Source: Lytechinus pictus (Eukaryota). Taken from it: a DNA stretch of 64,000 nucleotides. The stretch lies in contig NC_087263.1 in assembly GCF_037042905.1 (NCBI RefSeq), forward strand, positions 1,488,001 to 1,552,000, read 5' to 3'. The notes beneath the pieces were generated by a model. It was not told where the DNA came from and did no database searches. It saw nothing but the letters and a program-made list of their open reading frames with translations. Position numbers and translations under genes: made by a program. Below, piece by piece: positions 4,201-40,279 of this stretch. Numbering within the stretch: position 1 is the first letter of the stretch; each line of letters opens with the position of its first letter.

Positions 4201-6214
4201 TTTGATCGAGGGGTAAAGCAACATGAAGAAGGGGGGGGGGGGTGATAGAGTGAGAGAGAGACTGAGTGTGTGTGTAAGAAAGAGTGAGAAAACGAAAGAA
4301 TTAAGAATGAAATAGAGAGCAAGAGAATGAAAATGAGAGAGAAAGGTTTAGAGGGGTAAGAAATCGGACGAGGGACAATGTCTTACAAAAAGACAAACAC
4401 AAATTCAGGTAAAATGGAAGGAAGGGAATTAAAGAAGAGGGCGAAAGTGAAAATGATGAAAAGAAGACAAAACAAAAACAACAGAATAAAATCGAGATGG
4501 GGCACAGTTAAAAGGTGACTACTAGATGTGTAAACAAAGAATGTAATGAATGCAACAGAGAACGATCACGTGTAAAACTGAAATAATATAAACTGCGGAT
4601 ACCCCATGGGGAGAGAGAGAGCAAGTTGCTTTAAAAAATACCTAAAACAAGTGTATGGACCGACTAGGCCCGGCATATCTTTATAAGTAAATCAAACTTA
4701 AATTTTACGGAATGTGATTAGAATTACAACGCCATGTACAATAAATTTCCATAAGGTTTATTTTCTTTTCTTTTCGGGGGGGGGGGGTTACAAAAAAGCA
4801 TCTGCCTTATAGCAATGAACTCAGGTTGAAAGACTTAACATATGATCATTCAGTTGATGGGGAAAATATAACAATAATTTATTAATTTATAAAGAGTAGA
4901 GCTGAGGATTCCTTTCGATTTTTAATACATTACACATGGTGTATTGTAAGAGAATTCACGAATTATGACAATTCTGACAAGCAAATAAAGGGTTTGCTAT
5001 GGTTTCAACGCAATTTCAATCTATAGTTATACTATACTCAAGGCTAGCGTACTTATGTCACAAAGCACTATCGAGGAATAATGAGCACGCCATATATCAT
5101 TTGGAACGTACAGAGCTTAATTTGAAACAGTTCTTTTGCATTATCACAACATTGATAGTTCATTTTCCATGGATTTAGGCTGTGACAAAGCATGTCTATC
5201 GTCTCCTATACATCAATGTGTTGAGAATGATAACTTAATGAAATTCATTTGTCGTATTGGTAAATCAAAGTTGTCGCCGATTAATATGTTATCTTTAGCT
5301 TTGCTTTCTGATTCATCTCAATAATACGAATTGTTTTGACAATATCTGGTTTGTAATTGAAATAAAATATGTTTAGGTTAGAATTTATACAATTTGCAAA
5401 GTAAGACAAACAAATTGTCATCCGAAGTAAGGAGGTTTCCATCAATAATGGAAAAGCTAATTTATTCATATCCTTTTATTATGCGCAATAAATGAAGAAT
5501 ATATACAATCAAACTTCTAGTTACTTCATCAAAGACCCTAAGCTACAATACAAGTTAGATTTCAAATTTTAAATAGATTATTCAGCATCATCAGAATTTG
5601 CAATTGATATATAGGCCTATAATATATACATAAAGCAGTTCAAATCTATATGATAATAAAATCATCATTTCTTTCTGCATTATATACAAGTTCTGCAGTC
5701 AAATACATATTTCTTCAAATAAATACATTTGAAGTAATAAATTTCAGCTGTCAAAAATGCATACAAAATTGTTTTTACTTAAATTCAAATAGTTCAATAT
5801 ATTTTAGATTAAGTCACACAGAGTTTTAATAATTTTTATAAAACCTAAAAAAAAATTGTTCATTAAATATTCAGCATCACCTATTACTTACATATGTAAA
5901 ATAAAAATACATCAACTTATATTAGTTCTTGTATACATTAAATGGCAATATTTCATATATAATCTCATAGAAAAACAAAATTCAGAATAAGTTATTCAAT
6001 TATTATTTTTCTTCTTGTAACGCACCATTGAAGTATCGGGGAGGTGAATTAACTCCAAATAGTTTTGTAAAAATATTGTATTTTTAATAAAGACTTGTAA
6101 CGCATTTTACACCGTCATACCCTCTCTTTCTTCATATATAGTTTCATCTACCAAGCCAATTAATATTTTCTTTGATTGGAAAACTAGATTATAAAAAGAT
6201 AATAAGATAATATA

Positions 6215-6380
6215 ATAAATAACATTAATGAAGCTCCGATTATCTAGTCTAGTTGCCTTTATCTCCTACTGCTAAGAGGCGTTTGGTGCATTCAAGGAAT
6301 TGATGTCGGGTACCAATTCATCTCACCTGGGTGGAGTGAACACAATGTGGGTTAATATATTGCTGAAGGAAAACACACCA
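6215..6380 (-). mobile_element. Probable SINE fragment in the deaminase 3'UTR
   Basis: gggtaccaattcatctcacctgggtggagtg resembles a common invertebrate SINE core in reverse orientation, with an (aat)-rich tail on its left. Confidence 0.4.
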
Positions 6381-6716
6381 TCTCTCGTTAATTGTTGTAA
6401 TATGCCGTTACTGCATAGCAAAGAAGTTTCAAGAATATTTTTGAATAAATTTTGAATGCTAAAATGCATCCTTATTATTGATTCATAGCCATCCTTTTAT
6501 GGTTGCTAATGAAAATGAGTTGCCTCGCAACCGTTGCTATAATACTCAGTTTATTTCGGCGCAACCCCTGAAAATGTTATTGTGAACCTGTGTGCCAAGT
6601 TTTTCCTAAATTTTCCATTAATTTAGATAAGGTATTAACAGCTACTACATGTAGCAGTCTCTCCTCTGCTATTATGTGCAAAGATTCATGCTTTTAGCAC
6701 AATATAAATATCAATT

Positions 6717-7824
6717 TCATAAAAGCATTGAATATAAATACTCAGTCAACATATCTTCAGCGGCGTCTCTTTCTTCCTGAAGAGGTGGTTGACGAGGAGG
6801 CTGTCCAGGAGGTGGAACATGAGGGCGACGAGGTATCGCTGACTGTAGCTCATATTCATCTTCTTCTCCGTCATATTCATCTTCTTCTCCTTCATATTCA
6901 TCTTCTTCTTCGTCATATTCATCTTCTTGTCCGTCATATCCATCTTCTTCTCCGTCATATTCATCTTCTTCTTCGTCATATTCATCTTCTTCTCTGTCAT
7001 ATTCATCTTCTTCTCCGTCATATTCATCTTCTTCTCCGTCATATTCATCTTCTTCTCCGTCATATTTATCTTCTTCTATATATTCATCTTCTTCGTTATA
7101 TTCATCTTCTTCTCCGTCATATTCATCTTCTTCTCCGTCATATTCATCTTCTTCTTCATCATCTTCATCTTCTTCGCGCATTTTATTGTAATCCTTCATC
7201 ATCCATTCATCCTCCCAGTCACGCCACTTTCCGTACCACGTTCCATTACGAATGGCGTCCAGGTCTGTCAGGTTATGCGTCTCATCTATTTCCTGCATCT
7301 GTATGTCGTACTTGGTCAGTATCCATACCAGCTCGTCCCAGTCTTTCTTTTCGAAAGGTGACGCACGTAACTCAATAAGTTTGGGGAATGAGTTGTTTGT
7401 TTTGCAGCATATAACACATGACGGTCTTTTTATCCTATAGAATCCACTAAATCTAATCGTTACTTGTTTAAACAAGCGCTGAAGTTCCTTGAGTAGAGTG
7501 CTGCATTTATGACCTTCGTCATTACATGGCGAATAGTTTATGAACAGTTTAATGTTTGCATCATCTGGATATCCCTTTTCCTCGATGCGTTTGAGCAAAA
7601 TCTCCTCTGCGTGTAACCCACCCGGCTCGTTCCTTTCTATGATCACGTGCCTACTAACTCTGAAGTCTGTATCATCATCACCGGTGGGCTCGGTCTTGGT
7701 GATGAGACAGACGCATACAGCATGGATGTCTTTCCACTTCGCAAACCGACCCCCATACGGATGCAGGTTGCACTCAATAAACTGTTTCAGGATCTTCCAG
7801 CCATTTGAGTCTTCGTCATGAGCC
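6717..7824 (-). CDS. Terminal coding exon of an AID/APOBEC-like (APOBEC4-like) zinc-dependent cytidine deaminase with an acidic repeat tail
   Basis: The open frame (ORF 6717..7958) has N-x5-HAEE (His codon 7613-7611), LFINYSPCNDEGHKC (Cys codons 7526-7524 and 7505-7503), IRFSGFYRIKRPSC and FEKKDWDEL. A strong acceptor (tttttatttctttcctccAG, AG at 7826-7825) precedes it, giving a phase-2 intron. The ORF-track Met at 7958 lies inside a MITE, so the first ~45 aa are probably intronic. Confidence 0.85.
6849..7175 (-). repeat. Coding 21-bp tandem repeat, ~15 units, encoding (EEDEYDG)n
   Basis: The plus-strand unit tcatattcatcttcttctccg is repeated in frame within the deaminase ORF without stops. 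Confidence 0.95.
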
Positions 7825-7891
7825 CTGGAGGAAAGAAATAAAAAATGCATAACATTTACTAGACGCACAGGAAAATTTTTATGTATTAATA

Positions 7892-8029
7892 CCTTGGTCA
7901 CATTTGCTCTACGGCGGCCGTACGACGAGTCGAAAACAGCCGTTTTATTCATTTTCATTCAAATCACTATAATGTATAGCTGGTACAAAAAATGTTAAAA
8001 CGGCTGTCGTAGAGCAAATGTGACCGAGG
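7892..8029. mobile_element. MITE flanked by TA
   Basis: TIRs ccttggtcacatttgctctacg / cgtagagcaaatgtgaccgagg, with TA on each side. Confidence 0.8.
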
Positions 8030-8058
8030 TATAAGGGACCAATTAGTCGGTGAGATCT

Positions 8059-8277
8059 GGCCCTTGTTACAAAGAGTTATGATTGATCCAATGGATGGCC
8101 AGTAACGTCAATATCTACATGAATGTTTTCTAAATATGATGTATATTAGATTCATACATTCGTTTTCTTGAAAATCAATGTGCTTCTCTTCATTGTTTAC
8201 AAAGGAAAGCAATCACGATGGATTTTCATGCAGTTGTGGTTGATCGGATCAATCGTAACTTTGGAAAGCAGGGCCCT
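8059..8277. mobile_element. MITE with imperfect TIRs
   Basis: ggcccttgttacaaagagttatgattgatcc ... ggatcaatcgtaactttggaaagcagggcc. Confidence 0.65.
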
Positions 8278-8369
8278 GAGCTGAAGTTTTGTTATCATGA
8301 ACAAGTTGCGTAGATGTATGTAAATAAAGAATTGATGCAAAAGTGAAGCGTGAGTACATATATATGTAT

Positions 8370-8372
<3 letters not shown>

Positions 8373-8436
<64 letters not shown>
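8373..8436. repeat. (TA)n microsatellite
   Basis: About 30 TA units. Confidence 0.98.
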
Positions 8437-8439
<3 letters not shown>

Positions 8440-8504
8440 TTTAAAGAATAGCTATTATCTGTTCACTGTAGTCATTAACCCCTTACATTGTGTCTTTTGT
8501 TTGT

Positions 8505-8820
8505 TTCCGGCCAGCCATTAAATGGTATTACGACGCAGCTACGCAAGCACCGTGATGTCATAGAATTACCATTATTGCACCGTCGGTATTGCACCACCGT
8601 TGTGTCATCGCCGCGTATCGGGATGACTTCCGGTCGATCACACGACGCAGCGACGTTGCACGGGCATATGATACGATGCACAAAAAAAAACATTGCACCA
8701 CCGTGGCGCAATTGTCACGTGTAGGATACGATGCACAAAACAGACGTATGATTTCTGCACAGTTTCCTATTGAAAAAGTGATCTTTCTCCGCCTATATAC
8801 CAGCAGATATGTCAAGGGTC
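8505..8820. mobile_element. Diverged fragment of the Maverick-derivative arm (subterminal region)
   Basis: Matches ~49560-49960 (ttccggccagccat..aatggtattacgacgcag..gcaccaccgtggcgcaat..taggatacgatgcacaaaa). Confidence 0.85.
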
Positions 8821-9656
8821 ATTCTCAGAAAAATGCTACAATTGATGTGGGAAAAATCGTAAAAATGAAGTCTACAGAATGGGTTGAAAAATACATATTG
8901 TGAAAGTACCATGTATGAGAAAGTGGCAACAGAAAAGGGGCAAGTCGCTGTTGCGTCAATTTGAAGTACTGACCGGATTAACTCGAGCACTGTATATCAA
9001 CGTTACGGAGGTTAATCGTTAGCATTGCTCACTTATGTTACTCAATTAAATCACTTTTGAAATGATTGAAATAGAAATGCACACCATTTAGTTTTAGTGT
9101 GGTATCAATAATTTTATTTACTGAAGCCAAAATGTTTGCAAGATAGAAAAAATATTCAATATTGTTTTTCAGAAGCAGGATTTTACCAAATAACATTTAA
9201 CAAAAAGTACCATGAAAATCATCGCACATCTTTCGTTCAGTTTAATGTTCATAATTTGAATGAGGCCACCTTAAAATAACTTTCATCCATAACCTTAGAT
9301 CCTAAGTAATGCATGACCAATGCTGGGAATCCAAAGATAGTTTACCATTAAATCCTCTCGATGGCATTAAACCTTGTCAACATTCGTTACGGAAGTTAAA
9401 ATCAAATTACAAATTGCAATATTTATTTTGTTAGCTTAGGAACATCCATATTAAGGTATTGGTATAACATTTTTTATTTCTTTATTGAAGATGAATGTGG
9501 AACGCATTGCTTAATTTTCCCACCCCCCCCCCCCCCCAAAAAAAAAAAAAATGTTAAAAACACAACAGGAAACGGACAACTGTCATTTTTGTTGTCGTAC
9601 TTGTTCACAGTTGGAATGAGAAAACCGAACAACCGGGCAACAGAATTGTAGTTTAT

Positions 9657-12600
9657 TGTAGCGAACCAGTCCGCTACGGTTTTTGGTTATAATGCAGTAA
9701 ACGTAGATGGCGCTATAGCATTTGGTGCGTTAGAACTCAATGATCGACTTACGCAACGCACTGCGTAAGGCAGCTCTCGGGGACTATAAATAGCGGAGTT
9801 TCGCAGTAGAAACCCTTCGCAAAGCAGGCCGAAATCAAAAAGCCAAAAACCCAGTTCCTTGGTGGACACTAGAATACCAAGAAGCAATTAAAGAAAGAAA
9901 TAAATATAGAAATCGATTAAATAGACATTTTAGAAAGGAGGACTTGGAAATGTATCGAAAAAGAAAGCGTATGCCCAAAAAATAAAGAGACGAACACAAA
10001 AGGAATACTGGTTAAATTACTGTCAGTCTTTGAAGAGAACATCCAACTTAGGAAAAGTATGGGAAATGGTAAAAGGACTACAAAATGGTTCTGTCTCAAA
10101 ACATATATTTCCCAATTTATTAACAGAAAACAATACACCAGTAGCTAATGCTCAAGAAAAGGCAGAATTGGTTGCTAAGGCTTTTAAAACGATAGACAAT
10201 CGATTAGACAATGACGAGATTATTAGAAGAAATTCATGTGAAAATTTAATACAAAATACGATCAAAGAAAGCTGCTCCTCTGAATCACCTCTTGATGATG
10301 AATTTACATATGATGAATTAACAAGCGCTGTTAAAGAAATGAAAAATTCTGCAGCAGGAACAGATGGAATCAAACCAATTATGATACAACACCTACCGAA
10401 AATAGCTCTTTAGTTCATATTAGTTTTAGTAAACAATATTTGGAATTCCTCAATTCTACCCTCAGATTGGCATTATTCTACCCAGATCCCTGTACTTAAA
10501 CCAGGCAAAGACCCAACAAACCCTTCTTCATATCGACCTATTTCCTTGACATCAACTTTCTCCAAACTGATGGAAAGAATGGTTAAAAATAGACTTGTAT
10601 GGTTTATGGAGCGATGCAGTATCCTGACACCAACACAGGCAGGATTTAGAAAAAATTGAAGTTCTTTAGATCAGCTCCTTAGATTAGAAACGGACATACA
10701 GAAAGGATTAGCTAACAAGGAGTATGTCCTAGTTATTTTCATTGACCTTGAAAAGGCATACGACCTTTTATGGAGAAAGGGAATAGTATTTAAATGTCAT
10801 CAAGCTGGTATAAAAGGAAAAATGTTACAGTGGATTAATTCATTTTTACAAGATCGATATTGCAAGGTAAAAATTAATGGCCAGTTATCTTCACAATTTG
10901 TTCTGGAAAATGGAACGCCCCAAGGTAGTGTTATTAGTCCAATTTTGTTCAATTTAATGTTGAATGATCTAAAACTGATAGAAAAATCTGTTAAAATCTC
11001 TATGTATGCCGATGATATTGCAGTATGGTGCTCAGGCAGAAATCTTGACTTTTTACAAAAGAAAATGCAAAAAGCTATAAAAGAAATTGAACAGTGGTGC
11101 TCAACCTGGAGTATGATTATTTCACCTCAAAAGTCTGCTGTTATGATTTTTACCAATAGGCAGCATATAGAGGTAAATATTAAGGTTAAAGATAACTCTA
11201 TACCACAATACAAAGAATATAAGTTTCTGGGTATTTGGTTTGATGTGAAACTCACCTGGAAAAAGCACATCGATTATATAAAACTCAGATGTTCAAAAAG
11301 AATCAATTTGTTACGGTGTATAGCAGGAACAAGTTGGGGAAATAATAAAACGATTCTTTATATAATATACAAAGGTCTTATTAGATCCATATTAGACTAC
11401 GGATGTGAGTTATACGGCTCGGCTAGCCTTTCGCTAAAACAAGAATTAGATTCAATCCAATATCAGTCACTGAAAATAATAACTGGTGCAGTATATAACC
11501 CTGCCCTTGAAGCACTACAGGTAGAATGTGGTGAAAGACCTTTACAACTAAGAAGAGAACTGTCTGTTGACAAATACATGTTTTATCTTTTAACAAACAG
11601 AGATAGTCATCATCCTACTTTAGAAATTATTGAACCTTCCTGGTATACTGATACATTTACTTGGAAATCAGGTCGTGGACCCTTTGTAGTCAGAGCATGT
11701 AAGCCAAATGAAGAGATCCAAATTGAACAACTAAGCCAAAGAATATTACGAGAACCTTTTTGGTCATATGAAATACCTAGTATATCTTACTATATCCATA
11801 AGATTATCAATAAACAACGTAACTTAGTACAAGATATGAAAAACTGTGTCTCAGAAAGGATACATACAAGATGGAAAGGTCACTTAAATATCTACACTGA
11901 TGGATCAAAACAAGAAGACAAGAGAACCGGCTCTGCTTTTTATATACCAGAACTGGATATTAAAAGATTCTATAGATTAAATTCTGTAAGTATAATGAGA
12001 GCCGAATTAACAGCAATAGTAATGGCACTTGATTGGCTAGGAGATAACAGAGGTATGTCCGTGGTAATTTTTACAGATTCGTTGTCTGCTCTTCAAGCAC
12101 TTGAAAGCAATCGTATACAAAACAATCTTATTGTTGATATCTTGTATAAAATCAAAGTTTTACAATTATCAGATATTTATGTCAATTTTGAATGGATACC
12201 ATACCATTGTGGTATTAACGGGAACGATGTGGCAGACCTTTTAGCAAAAAAAGGAACATCAAAAGAACAAGTTGAATTAAACATTCCATATATCAAAGAG
12301 GAATGGAAAACCCACATGTCTTTGATTTATAAAGAAATCTGGCAGGCTCAATGGGTATCCTCATCTAAAGGAAGACATTTATTTAGCATCCAACCCAACG
12401 TGGCAGATACAATTAGTTATCAAGGTCTCATTCGGTTTGAAGAGACTATGTTACACCGTTTAAGACTCGGAAAATGTAAATTGAATTATTATCTGTATAA
12501 ATTTAATCAACATGAAAATGGTCTATGTTCCCATTGTCAGGTTCCTGAGACAATAGAACATTTTTTACTACAATGTAAGAAATATGAAAGTGGAAGAAGA

Positions 12601-13579
12601 ATTATGCAAAGAAGCCTGAAATTAAACAAGCCAATATCAGATCTGGCAACATTATTGGGAAGAAATGCAGATTATAAAGTCATCCTGAATTACGTGAAAA
12701 AAACAAAGAGATTCGAATAAGAATATTCCACTGATCTCTCTCCATCTCTTTCTCTCTCTCTCATCCTTTTGTTCTGATGATTAGTGATAATTCTTAGACT
12801 ACTAAAATTGAGCTTCGACCTAGCTTCTTATATACGTTTGCATACTATGAAGTACAAAAACGCACAATTTAATGGTGGTGGTAACTAATCATAATTATAT
12901 TGCACCTCGCTATATGACAGGTCAGACTAGTCTAACGCCGAGGACATTGATGCGGGAATTAAGCAACTAACTCGACTCGGAAACGACCTGGCGCAGATAA
13001 TCTACCAGATTGAAGAGCGCCAACTTAACTCCAACACCAACCAACCCGATCTCGTCACTTCGACGGCGGCTGAGGTCGGAGTCGGACGAAGAACTCCCTG
13101 CGCTCCTCTCCAACTGGGCTGAATCAAGAAAAGGTTTGGAAATGAACATTGCTCGCTTAATTTCTACTACTGCAAATACAATTCTGTATAATTGGTGACG
13201 GTGTTAATGGTGATAACATGTAAGAGATGCTGAATGTATAATTAAATTATGACCGTTGTCATAAACCAAATGTAATCATCGTCTCCAATCTGTGTGATCT
13301 ATGGAATCCGATTGACTTCTACAGTATAAGCCTTCCCATAGAGATTATACAGCCCCAATAGAAATCCTCTGTTCAGACTACCCCTCAACACTCCACCCCC
13401 ATATATTTTGGGAAAACGGAACACGCCCGGGTCTCTACATTACGCCATGTATACAGATATAAGGAAACCGCTCGCATTAAGGATGGCTAGTAATTCATCA
13501 ACGGATGAAGGTGATAGAGGCAAGGGACAAGCCGGCCCCCCAGCATCCAGGATCCGTTCAAAGATGGAGGGCCGCCACA
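9657..13579 (+). mobile_element. Gypsy solo LTR (TGTA...CACA, TSD TTAT) interrupted by a LINE
   Basis: 9657-9810 and 13049-13579 align to the LTR at 44943-45833. TTAT lies at 9653-9656 and 13580-13583. TATA box ctataaata at ~9784. Confidence 0.92.
9810..12978 (+). mobile_element. 5'-truncated I/Nimb-clade LINE (RT, RNase H, CCHC) with premature stops
   Basis: PVPWW, SYRPISLTS, DLEKAYD, GTPQGSVISP, YADD; RNase H IYTDGSK/RAELTAI/FTDSLS/WIPxHxGIxGN; CSHC-x8-H-x4-C; 3' end ttaagcaactaactc. Stops at 10411 and ~10657. Confidence 0.92.
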
Positions 13580-14195
13580 TTATCTTAAAAGTTTCTGGCC
13601 CTAAGTAATCCTAAGCAAGATCGTAAGCAATGCATGACCAATTCTGGGAATCCCAAGATACTTTACCATCAAATCCTCGAGTGGCATTTACCCTTGTCAA
13701 TCCTCGTTACGGAAGTTAAATCGAGTTAAAAATTGTAGTATTTGTTAGCTAAGGAAAATCCATATATACATGTAGGTATTCGTATAACCTTTTTTTTAAA
13801 ATAAAGATAAATGTGGAACGCATAGCTTAATTTGCCACCCTCCCCCCCCCCAAAAAAAAAATGTGAAAAACATAACAGGAAACGGAAACTGTTATTTTAT
13901 TGTCGTTCTTGTTCACAGTTGGAATGAGAAAACCGAATAACCGGGCCACAGAATTGCAGTTCATCTTTAAAGTTTCTGGCAAAAAACAATAACAATCGCA
14001 GTCTCGTAACCAGGATGAGTTCTCTGGGTTACGAGGAATCCCACCGCTTGCCAATAGCCAAAAAAAGATAGAAAAAAGAAGAAAAAATATATAAAAAAGG
14101 ACATGGGGGAAAAAATAATAAAAAAGTAAGGTGAATGAAACAAGAGGCTAAAAATTCACAAATACATAAATTATTAACGGAATCTATATGATCTA

Positions 14196-15883
14196 TTGAA
14201 ACCAGTAGATGACTCCTTTAAATCAACTTCATTCATCCGCAGTACAGATGGTGATAACATGAAACACTATACAGTCAAGGATGATTCTTTATTCTTTTCA
14301 TTTATTCTATTCCATTTCAATGTAGATAGGTTCAGATATTGTATAAACAACATATTTTGATACAAAGGTAAAATAATGTAAGTTATGTTCTCAAATTATG
14401 TTGTAATAACAAACTAATTGTTAACTGTTCATTGTTAATATTAAAGTGAAGTCCTCGTTTTTCTATTTCTTCGCTTAACTTAATGGATTGTAGCACATGT
14501 CTATGGATGGCATTCAGAAAATATGAACACAATGAAGTTCAAACTGTCATTTATGTTGACGGCGTTTTCTTGGATTATTATTATTGAGTCGACAAGCTGA
14601 TGTTTGTGCCTTTAGTTGTAGACTCCATCTTCACCCTCCGTTTCTTCTCCACCATCGTCATCGTCACCTTGATACTGGAATAAACCATCGATTTGTGAAC
14701 CATGCCTGGCTAACACTCTCTGTACGACTTTCCGGAATTCCATGCCATTCTCTAATCTTTCCGTGAGATCGGACACGATTTCATGATTGATGTCAGCGTC
14801 TTCGAGGTAAACGTTCTGCTGCAAGAACTGAGAGTAAAGATCGAAAAAGATGCGTTTGACTGCCCACATTAGTTTCACGTGAGCCTTTGCTTTAGCGTCT
14901 TCTTCTTCCATTCCTTCTGAGATGTATTAGTGATATTTTTCGTCTCTCAAGTCCTTGGTGGCCGTCATGGCTTTCTCTAACCATCCTCGATAAGCGAGGT
15001 TGTCTTCAGTTTCTTCCATGTTTGCTATCATTGACCGTCGATTCGTGTCCATCGCTTTCTGATACACTCGTTTCGGAATCATCGTTGGATTCTTCAACTC
15101 TTTGCATTTGGGAGGGTGGGTCAGAGTCTTCATCTTCACTCGTTTCTTCTCCAGTATCATGCTCATTTTGTTCATGCCTCTGCGTATCATACTTCCTACT
15201 AAAAGTTTTATCGCATCGTGAACAAGCGTAACGGTTGGACATATCCAACGTATTCATGTCGACTCAATGATTATTTGTTGGGAAATAATGAAGAAAATTA
15301 ACGTTCAACCTTGTAATTATACGTAATCATGAAACGCACGCGAAGGTACTTTGATCCTTACGGATTCTTACAGACTTTTACGGATTCTTACGGATGTTTA
15401 CGGATTTTTACGGATTCTTACGGATGTTTACGGATTTTTACGGATTCTTACGGATGTTTATGGATTCTTACGGATTCTACGGATTAATCAATGCTTTCAT
15501 ATAATCTCAAGGAAAATATGTTCATCCACGTTGGAATGACCCATGCAGCATGGATCATTCCAACGTGGATCCGTAAGGATCCGTAAAAATCTGTAAGAAT
15601 CCATAAGAATCCGTAAAAATCCGTAATGATCCGTAAGAATCCGTAAGAATCCTTAAGGATCCGTAAAAATCCGTAAGGATCCGTAAGAATCCGTAAGAAT
15701 CCGTAAACATCCGTAAGAATCCGTAAACATCCGTAAGAATCCGTAAGGATCCGTAAGAATCCGTAAACATCCGTAAGAATCCGTAAGAATCCGTAAACAT
15801 CCGTAAGAATCCGTAAGAATCCGTAAGGATCTGTAAACATCCGTAAGAATCCGTAAAAATCCGTAAACATCCGTAAGAATCCG
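14196..15883 (-). mobile_element. Older truncated copy of the fold-back Maverick derivative (broken C2H2 ORF plus inverted satellites)
   Basis: Aligns to the arm at 50238-51400. The zinc-finger ORF is fragmented (15006..15257, 14927..15190, 14612..14911). Satellites at 15350-15482 and 15568-15883 are in opposite orientations. Confidence 0.92.
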
Positions 15884-15885
15884 TA

Positions 15886-18800
15886 TATAGGGTATTTATA
15901 TTGCGCACATATCCACCTTGTTAGGTGCTCAAGGCGCTCCTAATTGCTAATGTTATGGCAAGTAAAATAAAACAAAACGATAATCCTGAAGGAATCATTA
16001 TTCCAGGAGAAAATGGAACCCAGTGTTCATAAAAAGAAATCAAAATATCGCAGCCTGCCTATGATGCAGTAATTTTTGTGAGTTCTGTTAATTCTGGTAA
16101 TATTGCGATAAAAGATATAAGGCAATTTGGAGAAATTGCAGGCCCTAAATTTAATTTAACAAAAACTCATGCAGTGTGAGATTATTAATAGTTATAAAGA
16201 TATACCCGGATTTCTGCAATATTACGTTCATGAAAACGAATGTTCCCTGTGCTGAAGCTGTCTGTGTGGACTTTCAGACACTCAAATGCACGGGACTAAC
16301 CAGTATGTCCCACAATAATTTGTAAATGCCGTTGTTCATGAGTCATCTATGTTAATCACAAATATGTCTCATTATCAAGAGCATTGGTAACCATGGTAAC
16401 AGTGCGGAGAAAATCAATCAGAGCCGAAGAAGTTGCATGACCAGCACGGAACCCGTATTGATGTAGAGATAATATATTGCACTTGTTTATGAAATCAAAA
16501 ATCTATTATGTATACAATTTTCTAAAATCTTTGAAAAAATTGGCAAGACTGATATGGGTCTGTAATTTCAAACATTTTCATTCGGACCATTTTTACTTAC
16601 TGGAACATAGTTACAGACTGCATTTTTTCCAATAACGTAAAAAAGAGCTAATCACATTCCACATGTTCATTCAAGCGTGAACGTTTAATTAAACGCCTTC
16701 GAATCATTGACGCATGTTAATTGGTCATGAACATAACGAAAAAGTTGATAAAAGATCAGTTTCAGTTACCAAAATAAAACAATACTTGCCTATGATATTT
16801 GAAAATCGTATTTTCAATAAATGTTCATTGAACCGTGAAACGATGAATATTGTTGAAGATACTCTTCCTAAAAATATATGTCATCATATTCTATCATTAA
16901 ATTGATAAAAATGTGTTTAAAAAAATCAAATTATAGCAAATTTTGACTTGTGTTTATTCAATCGTAAAATTTAACCAAAAAAGTTGTATCGTCTTTTAGA
17001 AAGTACCTTTTACAAGCCTTCTGACTATTTTTCATGATGAGAATTTGGAATCGGTTCCAATAAAATGGAATCAAAGTCATGATATTTGGCTTGTGACTTT
17101 TGAAAAGTGACATTTTTGCCTTCTGACGGTGCTCACTGAAGCATGACGTAAAATACGTCCATAACATTTACTCAGATGGTAGCTTATAAAATTACCTACA
17201 CACTCATGTAAAAATATATCAAAAACTCGCGTTGGTTCGGAAATCATTTATGTTTGTTTGTTCAAGGGGGGACTTACTTTTTTTGTGTGTATAGAACAAG
17301 GTGTAAGACAAGGCTGCCCACTCTCTTACTGTTTTTATTATTAATAATAATAATAATATAGGGTATTTATATCGCGCACATATCCACCTTGTTAGGTGCT
17401 CAAGGCGCTCCTAATTGCTGATGTTATGACAAGTAAAATAAAACAAAACGATAATCCTGAAGGAATCATTATTCCAGGAGAAAATGGAACCCAGTGTTCA
17501 TAAAAAGAAATCAAATATCACAGCTTGCTGATGATGCAGTAATTTTTGTGAGTTCTGTTAATTCTGGTAATATTGCGATAAAAGATATAAGGCAATTTGG
17601 AGAAATTGCAGGCCCTAAACTTAATTTAACAAAAACTCATGCAGTGTGAGATTATTAATAGTTATAAAGATATACCCGGATTTCTGCAATATTACGTTCA
17701 TGAAAACGAATGTTCCCTGTGCTGAAGCTGTGTGTGTGTGGACTTTCAGACACTCAAATGCACGGGACTAACCAGTATGTCCCACAATAATTTGTAAATG
17801 CCGTTGTTCATGAGTCATCTATGTTAATCACAAATATGTCTCATTATCAAGAGCATTGGTAACCATGGTAACAGTGCGGAGAAAATCAATCAGAGCCGAA
17901 GAAGTTGCATGACCAGCACGGAACCCGTATTGATGTAGAGATAATATATTGCACTTGTTTATGAAATCAAAAATCTATTATGTATACAATTTTCTAAAAT
18001 CTTTGAAAAAATTGGCAAGACTGATATGGGTCTGTAATTTCAAACATTTTCATTCGGACCATTTTTACTTACTGGAACATAGTTACAGACTGCATTTTTT
18101 CCAATAACGTAAAAAAGAGCTAATCACATTCCACATGTTCATTCAAGCGTGAACGTTTAATTAAACGCCTTCGAATCATTGACGCATGTTAATTGGTCAT
18201 GAACATAACGAAAAAGTTGATAAAAGATCAGTTTCAGTTACCAAAATAAAACAATACTTGCCTATGATATTTGAAAATCGTATTTTCAATAAATGTTCAT
18301 TGAACCGTGAAACGATGAATATTGTTGAAGATACTCTTCCTAAAAATATATGTCATCATATTCTATCATTAAATTGATAAAAATGTGTTTAAAAAAATCC
18401 AATTATAGCAAATTTTGACTTGTGTTTATTCAATCGTAAAATTTAACCAAAAAAGTTGTATCGTCTTTTAGAAAGTACCTTTTACAAGCCTTCTGACTAT
18501 TTTTCATGATGAGAATTTGGAATCGGTTCCAATAAAATGGAATCAAAGTCATGATATTTGGCTTGTGACTTTTGAAAAGTGACATTTTTGCCTTCTGACG
18601 GTGCTCACTGAAGCATGACGTAAAATACGTCCATAACATTTACTCAGATGGTAGCTTATAAAATTACCTACACACTCATGTAAAAATATATCAAAAACTC
18701 GCGTTGGTTCGGAAATCATTTATGTTTGTTTGTTCAAGGGGGGACTTACTTTTTTTGTGTGTATAGAACAAGGTGTAAGACAAGGCTGCCCACTCTCTTA

Positions 18801-21175
18801 CTGTTTTTATTATTAATAATAATAATAATATAGGGTATTTATATCGCGCACATATCCACCTTGTTAGGTGCTCAAGGCGCTCCTAATTGCTGATGTTATG
18901 GCAAGTAAAATAAAACAAAACGATAATCCTGAAGGAATCATTATTCCAGGAGAAAATGGAACCCAGTGTTCATAAAAAGAAATCAAATATCACAGCTTGC
19001 TGATGATGCAGTAATTTTTGTGAGTTCTGTTAATTCTGGTAATATTGCGATAAAAGATATAAGGCAATTTGGAGAAATTGCAGGCCCTAAACTTAATTTA
19101 ACAAAAACTCATGCAGTGTGAGATTATTAATAGTTATAAAGATATACCCGGATTTCTGCAATATTACGTTCATGAAAACGAATGTTCCCTGTGCTGAAGC
19201 TGTGTGTGTGTGGACTTTCAGACACTCAAATGCACGGGACTAACCAGTATGTCCCACAATAATTTGTAAATGCCGTTGTTCATGAGTCATCTATGTTAAT
19301 CACAAATATGTCTCATTATCAAGAGCATTGGTAACCATGGTAACAGTGCGGAGAAAATCAATCAGAGCCGAAGAAGTTGCATGACCAGCACGAAACCCGT
19401 ATTGATGTAGAGATAATATATTGCACTTGTTTATGAAATCAAAAATCTATTATGTATACAATTTTCTAAAATCTTTGAAAAAATTGGCAAGACTGATATG
19501 GGTCTGTAATTTCAAACATTTTCATTCGGACCATTTTTACTTACTGGAACATAGTTACAGACTGCATTTTTTCCAATAACGTAAAAAAGAGCTAATCACA
19601 TTCCACATGTTCATTCAAGCGTGAACGTTTAATTAAACGCCTTCGAATCATTGACGCATGTTAATTGGTCATGAACATAACGAAAAAGTTGATAAAAGAT
19701 CAGTTTCAGTTACCAAAATAAAACAATACTTGCCTATGATATTTGAAAATCGTATTTTCAATAAATGTTCATTGAACCGTGAAATGATGAATATTGTTGA
19801 AGATACTCTTCCTAAAAATATCTGTCATCATATTCTATCATTATATTGATAAAAATGTGTAAAAAAAATCCAATTATAGCAAATTTTGACTTGTGTTTAT
19901 TCAATCGTAAAATTTAACCAAAAAAGTTGTACCGTCTTTTAGAAAGTACCTTTTACAAGCCTTCTGACTATTTTTCATGATGAGAATTTGGAATCGGTTC
20001 CAATAAAATGGAATCAAAGTCATGATATTTGGCTTGTGACTTTTGAAAAGTGACATTTTTGCCTTCTGACGGTGCTCACTGAAGCATGACGTAAAATACG
20101 TCCATAACATTTACTCAGATGGTAGCTTATAAAATAACCTACACACTCATGTAACAACAATCAAAAACTCGCATTGGTTCGGAAATTATTGATGTTTGTT
20201 CAAGGGGGACTTACTTTTTTGTTGTGTATAGGACAAGGTGTAAGACAAGGCTGCCCAGGCTCTCTTACTGTTTTTATTAATAATAATAATAATAATATAG
20301 GGTATTTATATTGCGCACATATCCACATTGTTAGGTGCTCAAGGCGCTCCTAATTGCTGATGTTATGGCAAGTAAAATAAAACAAAACGATAATACTGAA
20401 GGAATCATTATTCCAGGAGAAAATGGAACCCAGTGTTCATAAAAAGAAATCAAAATATCACAGCTTGCCTATGATGCAATAATTTTTGTGAGTTCTGTTA
20501 ATTCTGGTAATATTGCGATAAAAGATATAAGGCAATTTGGAGAAATTTCAGGCCCTAAACTTAATTTAACAAAAACTCATGCAGTGTGAGATTATTAGTA
20601 GTTATAAAGATATACCCGGATTTCTGCAATATTACGTTCATGAAAACGACTGTTCCCTGTGCTGAAGCTGTGTGTGTGGACTTTCAGACACTCAAATGCA
20701 CGGGACTAACCATTATGTCCCACAATAATTTGTAAATGCCGTTGTTCATGAGTCATCTATGTTAATCACAAATATGTCTCATTATCAAGAGCATTTGTAA
20801 CCATGGTAACAGTGCGGAGAAAATCAATCAGAGCCGAAGAAGTTGCATGACCAGCACGGAACCCGTATTGATGTAGAGATAATATATTGCACTTGTTCAT
20901 GAAATCCAATAATCTATTATGTATACACTTTTCTAAAATCTTTGAAAAAAATGGCAACTTATGGGTCTGTAATTTCAAACATTTTCATTCGGCACATTTG
21001 TACTTACTGGAACAACACGAGCAATCTCTAATTCATCAGTTAATATACCGAGATCTAAACACTGATTGAATATTGCACAAAAGGGTTGACATAAAATATG
21101 TATTGATTTCTTTATAACATTGTTACTTATATCATCATACCCAGGACTGCAATCACTTGTTATGTTTGACACAAT
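15886..21175. repeat. Tandem array of ~1472-bp chimeric units (~3.6 copies)
   Basis: Unit starts at 15886, 17357, 18829 and 20296; near-identical short ORFs at 16714/18186/19658. Each unit is SINE tail + Tx1 RT piece + inverted CR1 RT piece + DNA-transposon right end. Confidence 0.97.
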
Positions 21176-22510
21176 CTTAAAGAGAAAAAAAGGCAGGGGC
21201 AAAATGTTCACGAAACAAAACTAGATTGGTTGCAAAGTTGGTAATTTGTTTGTTTATGCATGATCCATTTTCGCTTATGGCAGTTTGTTGTATGTTTTTT
21301 TCTTTCATTTTGGACAAGCATAGCTTTTTAAGGATTTTGTATTTCAATACTTGTGAAAAAAGGAATATATGTTTTTAAAATGTGATATTTTATTTAAATT
21401 CACAAATATCGCAAGAAATAAATTAAGTTTGGAAAAGAAAAACGAAGACAACTGATTGTATATTCGAAAATACTCATGCAACAAGAATATGCTGATACAT
21501 ATTGTATTAATATACATGTAAACTATTTGTGCTTTTGCAACTGACAGTCAGATGGCCATTGGTAATAGTTGATACTGATTTGAATCATTCTTATTTCTCT
21601 TCGAAAGAAATATCGAAGTTGAAATATACATTTTTTTTTCATTCTTCGAAATCGTCTGTTTAGGGACGACAGCTATAAAAGAAATTATTAATTACATAGA
21701 TTTGGTTTGGAGTGAACATTTGGCAGTTTTGCCGATTGTTGCAAAAGTAATGACTTATTGATATTACTGTGAAGAATTAAAATTGAAGGTTCCTTCATTA
21801 TTTTTTTATCCTCTTGGATTCTTGGCCTGTTAAAAAAATTCATGCTAGGAAGAAAAAGTTTAGAAAGAAAACATGAATCGAAATTTAAAAACTTGGAGTG
21901 TATATTGAAAAATGAGGACATTTATAATGAAGAGGGAATTATTATGTAACAGTAAATTTTGCTGGCCTAATTTTATGTAATCTGTACTCGTACTTTTGGT
22001 TTTCCATACTTTATTGTTTACATTTAACTTGTTTATTTCCATTCCAACTCATCTCATCCTTCTTTCCATCCTCACAATCCACATACATTGTCATGATCTC
22101 ATCCTTCATTCCATCTCCACAATACATCTCACATAGCAACACAGGTTCATTGCATTTCATTCTTTCATTCGGTTTCCCCTCAGTCATGCTTCCTGGTGTT
22201 CCATTAGCTTTCCACTCCACATGGTCTTATTGTTTAATTCTCATTAGGATTCAGTTTAACTCATGATCACCCTTCTCTATTCTCTGATTGGTTCTTATTT
22301 TTAAATAGGGTTAGTTCATTTTCGAGTTCATACCATTTTCCTTGTATTTGACTGGTTGATTTCTATGATTATCCAATGTGGGTACATTGGCAGAACTTCC
22401 CAGAAGATAAGATTGAAAATTAAAGTCAGTGCTGATCTGGACTTCATCGTGTTAACTTCTGATTTATTCTGTGTTCACCCTATCTTCAGTTTAATAATTT
22501 TGGTTTAATT

Positions 22511-23400
22511 CAGGGGCGTAGACAACGGGGGGGGGGGGGGGGGGTGAGGGGGATGCATCCCCCACCTCACAAGGTGGGGGGGGTGGCATGTACAATCATC
22601 CCCCCCAGGTTTTGGGGAATGATATTTGGTTACTTAATAAGTCATACTGATGATAATAATAGTAATAATAATAATTATAACAATTATAATATTAATAATA
22701 ATAATAATACTGTTTATGTTTTTTTGTATCTGTATGTTAATGAGCCGCCAGCCAATGTCCATCTATGGATACTACATGTATGCCTGTTTCTTTGAGGTAT
22801 AAAAAAGCATAGTATGTACGTATTCATTATGCTTTATAATGAACAGACATATTGTTATTTGTTTGTTGTTTATGTGTTCTATTCACAAATGGCCAGAGGC
22901 TGTTTTCATTCATAACCACATACCCATATCAAGACAACAAAGACTATACCTGCGTGTACACAGTTGACATTGGTTTTTTTTCTGAAGAGGTGTAACAGCA
23001 AAATTCACAGAGATAAATAAATAAGTAGTGTGGTTCAATATGCAATGCTATGTGTCAGTCCATTCTGTATTCGTATGCCACGGTGTGTAGATCTTGTCGA
23101 TGTATGTCTGTCCATTCAAGGCGTAGTATGTGTGTGGTGCGCGCACCCGTGTGTGTGTGTGTGTATGTGTGTGTGTGCGTGCACGCTTGTGTGTGTTATT
23201 TTACCTCATTAAGTATGCATCAGATTGCACGATTTCAAGTTCAAAATTGCAAAAGCTCCCTACCGTGGGAGGGGGGACACCCCCCTCCCACATCCTCCCC
23301 CCGCTCGGTCGCTTCGCTCCCTCGCTCGGGCGCTTTGCGCCCTCACTAGCGTTGCAGCCCAGTCATCCCCCCCAGGTGTACGAACCTGTCTACGCCACTG
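22511..23400. mobile_element. Non-autonomous hAT-like element with 8-bp TSD GTTTAATT
   Basis: TIRs caggggcgtagaca / tgtctacgccactg. gtttaatt at 22503-22510 and 23401-23408. Confidence 0.9.
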
Positions 23401-26323
23401 GTTTAATTAAAGTAAGGAGAGCTTTGGAGATTGAATTTACAGGAGAGCATAGGAGACTTAAGTGCAAGAGTTTATGATATTGGAAGTGTACAAACGGTCA
23501 TGTTACAGCACCAACAGCATGAAATGTAGAAACTGTAAACAGACTGGCCACGTATACAACACTTGCACATCAAACGGAGACACAGCCACACCCAGCGAGT
23601 AACGTAACACCACAGCTGATCGTGAACCCGTGAGAACGCCATGAAAGCCGGACCCACATCACGTGATCAAGCCGCGACAGCCAATGGGGCTCGCCCGAAG
23701 GAGAGAATGCATACGCCACAGAGGTATACACAACAAGCTGACGCAACGTCACCTTCTCGCAAACAACGTCAACCACACATCACGGGCTTTCTTCGTACAC
23801 ACATCGTCACAGTCTGATGAGCAATATAACACAAAAGACGTAGCAAATGAATGCGATTTAGGAGACGAAACATCGAGCGAGGCCGACCAGTTTCAATCGC
23901 CTTTCTCACCTGAAACCCCGACACCGAAAAATTCCAACAAAAAACCTCCGAAGCGGAAAAGAAAGGATCAAACACAGGAAGATAAATTGATCGAAACAAA
24001 TGATGGAAAAGAATGAAAGAACGCCGGAAAACTCAACCCTACTAGCATGGCTATTAACTCGGTCGATTTCGGTCAATGTCAGAGGAATACGAAATAAAAA
24101 GAAACGAGAAAAAATATTCAAATGGTTAGGCTTTCAAAAATATATCGTTTTGATGCAAAAAAAAATATAACCAAGGACCTTGGACCAATATTAAATATAG
24201 AAAGAAAATGTTCATTATTTTTTAACAATGGTACCAACCATTCAAAGGGTGTTTTAATTGGAATAAATGATGGTTTACCTATATAAATCATAGAATGTAT
24301 TAGACAGCCCGGTGGCCGTGTGATTGGTATTTGATTATCTTACAGCAATAAGTTTTATTTTATTGTAAATGTTTATGCTCTGACAAAACCATCGGAAAAG
24401 TCGAATTTTTAAAGGTTTACTTTCATGACTGAAAGCACAAGTACATAAAGATGATTTGCTATTATTGGGTGGAGACTGGAATTCAGTTCAAAGTTCATGT
24501 ATGGACACCAAAGGAATAGGTTATGCATTTAAACCTAATGACCTGTTGCAAAATATATGTAAAAAGTTAAACTTAGTAGACATCTGGATAAAATGTCACC
24601 CTTCACTCAAACAATTTACTTGGCGGCAATACTTACTTGGCTATTACTACCGATTAGACTATTGGTTGATATCATATAATTTATGTTCATTTGTTCATTC
24701 CGCAAATATAAGACCCATTCTGAAATGTGATCACAACGCTGTGTCTCTAAAACTTACAATTTCATCTTCAGGTAAGGGCAAAGGTATATGGAAATTAAAT
24801 AACTCACTTCTTAGAAACGACATATTTAAAGAAACAATCAGAAATATCATAAAGAAAGTAAAACTAAAATATAAAAACTATAATGATCAAATGTTATGGG
24901 ATTTATGCAAGATTAAGATCAAAGAATATTCAATAAAATACTCAAAGACAATACAGAAGAATAGAAACCAAATAAATAATACCTTGCAAAGTAAGCTTGA
25001 AATCCTTTCGGAAGCAAATGATGCTCACCCGAGTGACAATAATCTCACTGAACTTAACGATATTACTAAGCAGATTGATAAATTAATTGAAGATAAATGT
25101 AAAGGTGCCTTTGTGAGACCCCGTGACAAATGGATGGAAGAAAGCGAAAAATCATCAAAATATTTTCTCAACTTGGAAAAAAGGAACGGGATAAAGAAGC
25201 ATCTAGACTTTTTGAAACGGGATAAAGATGTCATTTTTGAGGAAGAAGCCATTTTAAAAGAAATCTATGAATACTACCAAAATCTATATTCAAATAAGAA
25301 TAATGTTCTTGTAACAGAAATATATGATTATTTGAATGATGTTTAGTTTACTACCCTGTCGGAATAAGAAGCTGACCTTTGTGAAGGTTTACTTACAGAA
25401 TCCGAGTGTTACAAAGTATTGAAGTCAATGAAAAGTAACAAGACTCCAGGTAGTGATGGATTATCAGCAGAGTTTTATCAATGTTTTGGCTGGGCATAAA
25501 GTATATGGTTATCAATAGTTTGAATGAAGGTTACAGAAAGAATAAGATATCAGAATCTCAAAAGCAAGGTATTTTGAAATTGTAACATAAAAAAGGTGAC
25601 AGAGGTTTACTTGACAATTGGCGTCCTATATCACTTCTAAACATCGATTACAAAATTGCAGCCAAAGTCATTTGTTGACGTCTTCAACGTGTTATCGATA
25701 AAATCTAAGGATCAAACTGGTTATCTAAAATTGCGTTCAGCTTCAGAAAATGTTCGTTTAGTTGAAAATGTAACTGATCTTTGTTCACTGGTAAATTCCA
25801 GGTTCCAGGTTATTTCATATATTTAGATTTCAAAAAAGCTTTTGATAATGTTAACCATCAATCTTTATTTCAGTTATTACATGAATTGAAATTCAAAGAT
25901 TCACTTATTAATTGAATTAAAGTTCTGTATAATGATGCTTCCGGAATAAGAGTGATTAATAACGGGTGGATGCCACAAAATATACACAACAAAAAAAGTA
26001 AGTCCCCCTAAATCAAATTGCTGTAACTTTTGAACAGAATTATTTTGAGATATGATATTTCGGAGGTGGTTTTATACACTCATTGAGCAACCCCTAGGGA
26101 AAAATGAGATTTATCGGTTGAGTCAGGCATGATTAATTAAAGATTGAATCAAAAATGACCATTTTTGAAAGTCACAAGAGTCGTTTTTCAGATTATGCAA
26201 ATACAAAGTTGGGCAAAAGTTGTTGTTAGGTGAGTTGTGTTAATACTGTTTTACAATCCATCATTTAGCCACTCCACACACAATTTGATATCGTATGTTC
26301 ATGGTTGAGAGATCACAATATTG

Positions 26324-26462
26324 CAGGGGCTGCAGAAGCGGGGTGAGGGGATGGGGGCTAGGGGCCCACCACTTTTTTCCAAAAGCATGTACAAAAATGT
26401 AAAAATGACCACTTTTGGCTAGGCCCCTCCCCCACACTTTGAAAACCGTTCCGTGGGCCCTG
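26324..26462. mobile_element. Short MITE (5-bp flanking repeat TATTG); a related copy lies inverted at ~38355-38513
   Basis: caggggc ... gggccctg flanked by tattg. Shares tttgaaaaccgttccg with 38363-38378 (reverse complement). Confidence 0.6.
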
Positions 26463-26730
26463 TATTGTGACGTATCATAACAGGGGTTTTTGTTAGCATC
26501 CTCTACAACTTATTAGTTCATATCAAAATTTAAAAATGTCGGTGGCTCCCCCCATTATAGGCCCCTCCCCATTTTTAAATTATGGATCCACCCCTTATTT
26601 GTCCATGAATTAAACTGATCATGATAATTTTTTAGGAAAAGAACACATTTATGACGTGTAAAGAGTATTCATTCCTAAGTTTTTGAATATGCTCGCTCAA
26701 CCATGAAAAAGTTAAAAGTTCGGAAAGTGT

Positions 26731-33639: not shown

Positions 33640-34560
33640 AATGCCGTTGTTCATGAGTCATCTATGTTCATCACAAACATGTCTCATTATCAAGAGCATT
33701 GGTAACCATGGTAACAGTGCGGAGAAAATCAATCAGAGCCGAAGAAGTTGCATGACCAGCACGGAACCCGTATTGATGTAGAGATAATATATTGCACTTG
33801 TTCATGAAATCCAATAATCTATTATGTATACACTTTTCTAAAATCTTTGAAAAAAATGGCAAGACTGATATGGGTTTGTAATTTCAAACATTTTCATTCG
33901 GAACATTTGTACTTACTGGAACAACACGAGCAATATTTAATTCATCAGTTAATTTACCAAGATCTAAACACTGATTGAATATTGCACAAAGGGGTTGACA
34001 TAAAATATGTATTGATTTCTTTATATTCTTTGTTACTTATATCATCATACCCAGGACTGCAATCACTTTTTATGTTTGACACAAATCCATGATCTCGGTA
34101 CAAGTGATTGGTTGGGAAAAAAAAAACAAGTCCTTGGATTTTTATCCAAATATCTACAAAAATTCAAATCTAAATTATTGTAATGATCAACAGGAAAAAT
34201 CATTTCAGTTACAATATTGACAAAATGTCAATTGAATACATTACAAATAGCAGAGGTATCATAGAATACCTGGTTATTACATTAAAAAAAATCAATACTT
34301 TTTATTTGCACGACCCATTGCACAATTGACTAATTTAACTAATATATTAAAAAGGTAGATGATTACCGATGTCAGTTATTAATATTCCCGATTCAACTTT
34401 GTCTACATGTATATCATTATATTATCAATTACAGAGATTGTGTCATCCGTGATTCTGGTAGGATGGTCAATCAATGGATACATATGATGTGATAACAATA
34501 AATTAAGGAAATTATCAACATATTGCACTTTACCCATATTTTTGCATTGAAAATTAATAT
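33640..34560 (-). mobile_element. Old CR1/L2 fragments (also at ~43340-44270 and in the tandem array)
   Basis: FSKILEKCIHNRLLDF..QYGFRAGHATSSALIDF; PTRITDDTISVIDNI. Confidence 0.8.
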
Positions 34561-34641
34561 GTAAAAGATATTGTCTATAGTGACGAAGAGTGATGTTGAG
34601 CCAAGTGCTGAAAGAATGTGTGAGGGCAGTTGTTATGCACA

Positions 34642-37600: not shown

Positions 37601-37905
37601 CGATTTGGAAATCCATGGGAGCTTCGGTGATTTTTTGTAGTTAGATGTCTTATCTCTAAGTTTTGGAATATGAGTGTCAAAGTGTAAATTAAATTTCCCC
37701 ATCCAGTGGAACAGTAATCAAATTGTGACTTTATAACAGATTTTATATTATTTGTAAATAACAGCTGACATTTTAGACTCCATTTTTGAAAGCGATCTTT
37801 GACTTTTGGACATACTAGGCCGAATGTATACTAGTCCTAATGTATTTTGACACTGGAAACCTTGATGGTTTAAACACAAAAATAATAGCTCTCAGGCGGG
37901 TATGA
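34642..37905. mobile_element. Cluster of CR1/L2 RT fragments in both orientations (plus ~34995-36358; minus 34810-34994 and 36360-37705)
   Basis: LFADDTN, KFLGVTIDETLSW, LPHISYCNIVWG (plus); NYRPISLL, DFSKAFDTINH, GVPQGSLLGP (minus). The block is absent from the sister segment at ~44340. Confidence 0.88.
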
Positions 37906-40265: not shown

Positions 40266-40279
40266 TAATTTCCAACGAC

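Follow-up and report, generated by a model that had tools for sequence, protein, structure and literature searches.

What does the uninterrupted exon at 6717..7824 of a 64,000-nucleotide (nt) stretch of the Lytechinus pictus genome (NC_087263.1, positions 1,488,001 to 1,552,000; the window, numbered here from its first letter) encode, and does it belong to a working gene? A preliminary description made from the letters of the window had proposed an invertebrate AID/APOBEC-like deaminase carrying signatures of the APOBEC4 type. Our analysis makes it likely that a real gene of two exons lies here and that this exon holds most of its coding sequence; the product would be an AID/APOBEC-like zinc deaminase that is not secreted, presumably a C-to-U enzyme.

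A mechanical call of open reading frames (ORFs) returned a minus-strand ORF at 6717..7958 (413 amino acids), of which 7825-7958 is intron and not coding. Within the exon, 368 codons lie open from 7823 to 6720 on the minus strand and are closed by a stop codon at 6717-6719. The features of the exon and its 3′ side are listed below, with residues counted in the exon-encoded protein.

6717..7824, minus strand: coding part of exon 2, made up of the G of a split ATG, 368 codons and the stop; predicted protein 369 amino acids
7152..7823, minus strand: AID/APOBEC deaminase domain, residues 1-224
7743-7766, minus strand: LHPYGGRF, loop 1, with His21 (7761-7763) as a proposed second-metal ligand
7602-7613, minus strand: HAEE at the start of helix 2, with zinc ligand His71 and catalytic Glu73
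7503-7532, minus strand: SPCNDEGHKC (PC-x6-C), with zinc ligands Cys100 and Cys107 and a six-residue loop-5 spacer
7404-7427, minus strand: RPSCVICC, loop 7, with Cys136, Cys139 and Cys140 as the proposed remaining second-metal ligands
6850..7175, minus strand: acidic (EEDEYDG)n tract, an in-frame 21-nt tandem repeat of 15.8 copies (Tandem Repeats Finder)
6720..6849, minus strand: Pro-rich C-terminal tail, 29 of 42 residues identical to P0001, the Lytechinus variegatus orthologue
6153..6716, minus strand: probable 3′ untranslated region (UTR), covered by an X1 contig and 86.5% identical to the 3′ region of the L. variegatus orthologue

All four catalytic-site residues are intact in the exon-encoded protein; the HAEE motif, the SPC-x6-C motif and the catalytic Glu reported in the preliminary description do lie in an open exon. 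Among 29 family members, His71, Glu73 and Cys100 are each kept in at least 90% and Cys107 is invariant. The acidic tract, present in the tandem paralogue L002 and absent from both the L. variegatus orthologue and the other tandem paralogue, L003, is a young, lineage-specific minisatellite expansion.

To judge from its model, the protein has a true AID/APOBEC fold with an HxE/PC-x(n)-C centre. The AlphaFold2 model (predicted local distance difference test 88.7, predicted template modelling score 0.87) shows the full α1-β1-β2-α2-β3-α3-β4-α4-β5-α5-α6 order, its five-stranded sheet being packed with six helices that include the C-terminal helices 5 and 6, which distinguish APOBECs from cytidine deaminases (CDAs) and TadA. 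VIA-align superimposed model residues 5-219 on APOBEC3H (5w3v_D) with Z 17.4 and a root-mean-square deviation of 2.6 Å over 171 of 183 residues; all 50 matches listed were APOBEC3 or AID, and the best Foldseek matches in the PDB and Swiss-Prot were all AID/APOBEC. A single-sequence search of PDB sequences gave no match and the family profile alone succeeded: hmmsearch with this profile ranked 59 APOBEC3, APOBEC2, AID and APOBEC1 chains first (the best, APOBEC3G, at 1.5e-16), the first non-APOBEC entry being T4 dCMP deaminase at 2.4e-3. The profile score and the structural alignment lie well outside what chance would give. The nearest ESM-Atlas clusters are molluscan and of APOBEC type. The best profile and fold matches are therefore to polynucleotide deaminases, as the preliminary description had supposed, with APOBEC and AID coming ahead of the CDA, dCMP and tRNA deaminases that it had named as the alternative outcome.

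In Pfam, the domain alone passed the APOBEC_N cut-off marginally (26.1 bits against 25), and with the whole product APOBEC_N, NAD1 and SNAD4 fell just below their cut-offs. Among the 29 family domains, APOBEC_N was matched by 27, NAD1 by 27, SNAD4 by 26 and XOO_2897 by 12. Relatives are few: phmmer, run exhaustively over 1.84 billion representatives, returned only 22, those with names coming from L. variegatus, Crassostrea gigas and Lingula anatina (AID-like deaminase 1), and a word-based protein search returned one match only. The closest protein in 5.8 billion is the product of L. variegatus LOC121405687, at 66% identity.

To which branch of the AID/APOBEC family does the protein belong? Krishnan et al. 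(2018, PNAS, PMC5889660) define a lophotrochozoan-echinoderm clade of classical AID/APOBECs by a loop-1 His together with three Cys or His residues in loop 7. In our model, His21 sits in loop 1, between helix 1 and strand 1, and Cys136, Cys139 and Cys140 sit in loop 7, between strand 4 and helix 4. The loop-1 His is found in 25 of the 29 family members, most of which have at least three Cys or His residues in loop 7; of three relatives that lack the loop-7 Cys, one has Pro in place of the loop-1 His and one lacks that region. The named relatives come from echinoderms and lophotrochozoans, and the family forms a lineage-specific, clustered expansion in the genome, as in the clade. By its match to the published definition, the protein fits membership of this metal-binding clade, and we propose that the loop-1 His and the three loop-7 Cys residues form a second metal site. 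The guess in the preliminary description that the RPSC-x2-CC segment might bind a second zinc thus agrees with the second-metal insert as published. One Logan-derived relative, P0002, has PAL for HAE and SPS for SPC and is apparently a naturally dead copy; a catalytically dead copy is also reported for Evechinus (PMC5889660). The gene is an uncharacterized new member of the clade published in 2018 rather than a new enzyme class.

The PC-x6-C motif had suggested a tie to APOBEC4, and here the preliminary description holds only in part. Human APOBEC4 has the motif HxEx30PCx6C (PMC4889046), and the window protein does share its PCx6C, the spacer between HxE and PC being 25 here against 30 in the human protein. 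A special relationship is not borne out. The Pfam APOBEC4 family (PF18775) scored 12.8 bits against a cut-off of 27.2, and APOBEC4 models ranked 21st and 30th by fold. The spacer between the two cysteines is labile: it is x6 in sixteen of the 29 family domains, x2 in twelve and x4 in one, and the x6 cluster on C19, which includes the window copy, is sister to the x2 cluster on C17 (support 94/93). Because x6 and x2 alternate between sister clusters, PCx6C is not evidence of APOBEC4 ancestry; it is instead a common state of the clade. Moreover, the metal-chelating insert of APOBEC4 draws on loop 1 for two Cys and a His and on loop 3 for a Cys (PMC5889660), whereas loop 3 of the window protein (residues 65-70, NEPGGL) has no Cys and the Cys cluster lies in loop 7. 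These findings speak against any particular tie to APOBEC4. The HPYG motif, which had been listed as an APOBEC4-type signature, makes better sense as the part of loop 1 that supplies the His ligand to the proposed second metal site, and a bridge between APOBEC4 and the invertebrate enzymes is not what the gene represents; it belongs with the 2018 clade.

At the boundary of the exon, a canonical acceptor occupies 7825-7845, a polypyrimidine tract with a terminal CAG, after which the exon starts GGCTCATGAC; the paralogues and L. variegatus share the boundary at 7824. For L. variegatus, the coding sequence given by NCBI opens with a 2-nt piece, exon 1 ending ...CTCAT and continuing into GTGAGTATT, and exon 2 there starts G GCT CGC..., giving M-A-R-K. 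In the window, exon 2 starts G GCT CAT GAC, with which the same split ATG would give M-A-H-D-E-D; upstream of the catalytic motif there is no other Met in its frame. L. variegatus exon 1 had no match in the window by blastn at default settings, but with a word size of 7 a homologue was detected on the minus strand at about 44960-44834, ending ...AAACAT before GTGAGTATT. Its homologues are the first exons of the L. variegatus gene and of L002 and L003. The resulting gene model adds two features to those above.

44834..44960, minus strand: candidate exon 1, a 5′ UTR that has the AT of the start codon as its last two bases and a GTGAGT donor after it; its 5′ limit is uncertain
7825..44833, minus strand: proposed intron 1, 37,009 nt, GT...AG, filled with the remains of transposons

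No further deaminase exon was found within the window. Below 44940 the sequence occurs once in the genome; above it, at 44940-44990, a dispersed repeat (at least 40 copies, 86-92% identity) ends against the candidate exon 1, and given this abutment transcription may start in or beside an element resembling a short interspersed nuclear element.

Evidence on transcription is indirect and mixed; in favour of a transcript are assembled Logan contigs. X1 contigs match 6153-6879, 7179-7444 and 7419-7824 without a difference, while the unique bins of the intron have depth 0. One X1 contig of 533 nt matches 7419-7824 and leaves the genome exactly at 7824, its remaining 127 letters having no match in 6100-12099. 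Words of the exon were present in contigs of eight runs from two studies (57-79% of the sampled words). The runs that hold exon 2 also carry 0.28-0.39 of the words of 44640-44990, and none carries half; since only an exon-sized part of that interval is expected if the runs are RNA, this fraction fits a transcript in which exon 1 is spliced to exon 2. The contig and word data together are consistent with such a spliced transcript, the join itself being deduced from them. A protein search with the first 135 residues for partial transcript-derived proteins that show the splice found none.

The gene is one of a small and mobile family. Nine family loci are present, three in tandem on C19 (L001, which is the window copy, L002 and L003), three on C17, one on C8 and two on C2, and a genome search with APOBEC_N or the family profile found nothing beyond these nine. 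Eight of them are open; the ninth, L008 (C2:21138320-21139018), is interrupted by one in-frame TAA downstream of the PC motif, which probably marks it as a pseudogene or else as a prematurely terminated allele. The positional orthologue of the window copy is L. variegatus LOC121405687 (protein identity 66-69%), with DNA identity of 86-91% in the 3′ flank and 78% in the coding domain. Locus L009 and L. variegatus XP_041457445 share 96% protein identity.

L002 (C19:1463808-1473799) is a chimera. It matches L003 at 99-100% identity from the promoter through exon 1 and the intron to ~60 nt into exon 2; starting at the equivalent of window position 7762 and with the 3′ flank included, it follows L001 almost without difference save for a diverged patch at 7465-7564 (loop 5 and helix 3). 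The gene order L003-L002-L001 fits the expected product of an unequal crossing-over of L001 with L003, provided that L002 is not an assembly artefact. Between L001 and L002 the ratio of nonsynonymous to synonymous substitution rates (dN/dS) is 2.2-3.0; we rejected positive selection as the explanation, the differences being patches copied from L003-type sequence. Synonymous divergence is greater in the domain (0.26) than in the tail (0.06), which indicates exchange among paralogues. In L. variegatus, neighbouring copies (L012:26100-27000 and L012:19052-19852) have identical N-terminal halves and different C-terminal halves, and the identity of the N-terminal halves indicates gene conversion within that species. 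The sequences show a family that evolves through gene conversion and unequal crossing-over as well as through in-frame indels.

If the gene is translated as modelled, its chemistry can be sketched from that of its relatives. His71, Cys100 and Cys107 would hold a zinc ion and Glu73 would shuttle a proton, and cytosine in single-stranded DNA or RNA would be hydrolytically deaminated to uracil in a zinc-dependent reaction. Loops 1 and 7, which in APOBECs read the bases that neighbour the target, would be tied to each other by a second zinc with a structural role. The protein has no signal peptide, so an intracellular site of action would be expected. Several Logan-derived relatives seem to carry a signal peptide, but these stretches are translated intron polypyrimidine tracts and were rejected as true N-termini. 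By analogy only, the enzyme could serve in defence against viruses or transposons, and an antiviral or anti-transposon role is plausible on that basis. One idea for the acidic tail is that it acts as an autoinhibitory mimic of nucleic acid. A bolder version of this scheme can be put forward only tentatively and is on balance unlikely: that the C19 enzymes are active polynucleotide mutators whose target preference is set by a zinc-braced clamp of loops 1 and 7 and by a variable loop-5 insert that paralogues exchange, that the young acidic, Tyr-periodic tail restrains them by mimicking nucleic acid, and that the cluster is diversifying in an ongoing arms race against viruses or transposons. If it were true, these enzymes would offer a compact deaminase scaffold from nature that differs from those of vertebrates used in base editors.

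Several observations weigh against a working AID/APOBEC-like gene, and three other explanations were weighed. In the first, the fold and zinc site are kept but the protein is no mutator: it binds nucleic acid or acts on some unknown substrate, in the manner of APOBEC4, APOBEC2 or the 'inactive' SpAIDLs of sea urchins. Human APOBEC4, with the same PCx6C spacing, has no detectable deaminase activity (PMC4889046), and several sea urchin AID-like proteins are inactive in standard assays, only SpAIDL1 and SpAIDL2 among five SpAIDLs having been significant in mutator assays (PMC5956068). The long acidic tail could also impede the binding of nucleic acid. Yet the four catalytic residues, Glu included, are kept across the family, and P0002 shows what their loss looks like; LaAIDL1, of the same clade, is active (PMC5956068); and APOBEC4 is no close relative by profile or fold. 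We therefore regard a non-mutator as distinctly unlikely.

The second explanation is that the copy was recently disabled or fell out of use and is drifting towards a pseudogene, having been parted from its promoter by 37 kb through transposon insertions. Three raw RNA-seq runs of the same species (X9-X11), of which ~6% of each was read, gave zero exon reads, the only reads within the stretch falling on intron repeats, and the RNA nature of the contig runs is a guess, albeit one backed by their patchy, exon-only coverage. The dN/dS of the domain against its orthologue is 0.66 (bootstrap 0.44-1.10), which is not clearly below 1; L003 against its own orthologue gives 0.75, some paralogue pairs give ~1.0-1.4, and the range taken over the orthologue and paralogues was 0.66-1.2. 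The transposon-filled intron diverges from those of the paralogues from 7845 onward, and L008 shows that a family locus can acquire a stop. Against drift, the 368-codon frame is intact, and in a neutral simulation at 0.1 substitutions per site it stayed open in 0.35% of trials (P = 0.0035). The six indels relative to the orthologue are all in frame, and the catalytic and metal-site residues, all present here, are conserved from urchins to oysters. A kept frame, in-frame indels and conserved key residues make neutral decay unlikely despite a dN/dS close to 1, a combination typical of defence gene clusters that evolve fast. The exon is, moreover, represented in contigs from both studies, one of which ends exactly at the acceptor, and the exon-1 homologue retains its AT followed by the GT of the donor. 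Of two outcomes that the preliminary description had named as telling against a gene, a dN/dS near 1 is realized in part, though preservation of the frame opposes neutrality, and the lack of a transcript spliced at 7824 is countered by a single contig. Drift towards a pseudogene is accordingly improbable in our judgement, and the gene is real and probably functional.

The third explanation, descent from bacterial XOO_2897-like toxin deaminases or from a nucleotide (CDA or dCMP) deaminase instead of AID/APOBEC, draws on XOO_2897-deam (PF14440) being the single best Pfam match and the only one above cut-off for the whole 368-residue product (31.6 bits against 27), and the only family in the NCBI-derived annotation of the L. 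variegatus protein, but is very hard to sustain when that match (31.6-32.8 bits) is confined to the HAE-PC core at profile positions 16-78 of 101 (63 positions), when the domain alone passes APOBEC_N, when relatives match XOO_2897 in 12 of 29 cases against 27 for APOBEC_N and for NAD1, when the model has the full six-helix APOBEC fold, when dCMP deaminase first appears as far down the profile search as it does, and when the gene is a spliced animal gene without toxin-delivery domains.

The surroundings of a likely deaminase gene are, as the preliminary description had it, those of decayed transposable elements: neighbouring ORFs are fragments of reverse transcriptase and RNase H, of an endonuclease of the long interspersed nuclear element (LINE) type and of an aspartyl protease.

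10822-12717: RVT_1/RNase_H ORF, a transposable-element fragment in the intron
27810-28532: RVT_1 ORF, a transposable-element fragment in the intron
29005-30123: LINE-type endonuclease ORF, a transposable-element fragment in the intron
47419-47991: aspartyl protease ORF, a transposable-element fragment

A 37-44-nt match of the paralogue promoter region recurs at 16308, 17780, 19252, 20711, 33623 and 43312; it is a dispersed or tandem repeat and was rejected as exon 1. At the first four of these positions the short motif has a period of ~1,472 nt, suggesting a tandem repeat with a long unit, and the motif of 16308-20754 also lies directly upstream of exon 1 in L002 and L003. Fold-back intron repeats at 7885-8260, resembling miniature inverted-repeat transposable elements, draw hundreds of RNA reads, so that members of that repeat family must be transcribed somewhere in the genome; many of these reads have joints between opposite strands (8095/8232) and loose ends. 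An ORF at 51368-52063 with matches to Pfam GhoS and Rho_RNA_bind, none with a passing stretch, was set aside as probable low-complexity noise.

How does the gene compare with the systems already described? With the lophotrochozoan-echinoderm clade, as described in PMC5889660, it shares the APOBEC fold, the HxE/PCxnC centre and the loop-1 and loop-7 ligands, as well as an occurrence in echinoderms, molluscs and brachiopods with tandem lineage-specific expansions and occasional dead members. PMC5889660 does not count the clade among those that carry an insert between the two catalytic cysteines, whereas roughly half of the members in our set have PCx6C; the 15-unit acidic repeat is confined to the window gene and its near copy L002. 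LaAIDL1 (AWK77801.1) is 29% identical over 159 residues (E 5e-10) and has an R-x-SC...C-x-C loop 7 and the loop-1 His. It is a mutator in Escherichia coli assays (Liu et al. 2018, PMC5956068) and differs from the window protein in being a brachiopod protein with two deaminase domains, PCxxC and no acidic repeat. L. variegatus LOC121405687 (XP_041452520-22, 'uncharacterized protein') has the same two-exon plan with a split ATG, PCx6C, the same type of loop 7 and a Pro-rich tail; besides lacking the repeat, it differs in a longer loop 7 and in a first intron of ~10 kb against 37 kb. Vertebrate APOBEC4 is alike in its AID/APOBEC fold, PCx6C and an extra metal-binding insert, which in the window protein is predicted; it is unlike in building that site, according to PMC5889660, from loops 1 and 3 and not 1 and 7.

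SpAIDL1-9 (Liu et al. 2018) likewise form a multi-copy, polymorphic sea urchin family of AID/APOBEC-like proteins with a small first coding exon, some of them immune-induced and some active (PMC5956068). SpAIDL1 has 193 residues, with H86, E88, C123 and C126 in a PCxxC arrangement, against 369 residues and PCx6C in the window protein; the distance from His to Cys is 37 against 29, and the stretch beyond the second Cys is 67 residues long against more than 115. Set apart by these published sizes and spacings, the SpAIDLs are probably another clade.

Invertebrate AID/APOBEC-like enzymes are almost unstudied, those assayed so far being five SpAIDLs and two LaAIDLs. The locus gives the metal-binding clade a clean and complete gene model from a genus of sea urchins used in the laboratory, and its near-identical chimeric copy, diverged neighbour and cross-species orthologue make up a natural series whose members differ chiefly in the acidic tail and in loops 5 and 7. 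The interest of the finding is moderate and lies chiefly in the second zinc site, the loop-5 insert and the rapid turnover of the cluster. With this series, whether the second zinc site exists, how PCx6C affects activity or target preference and how fast defence-type clusters of this kind turn over all become testable in the family.

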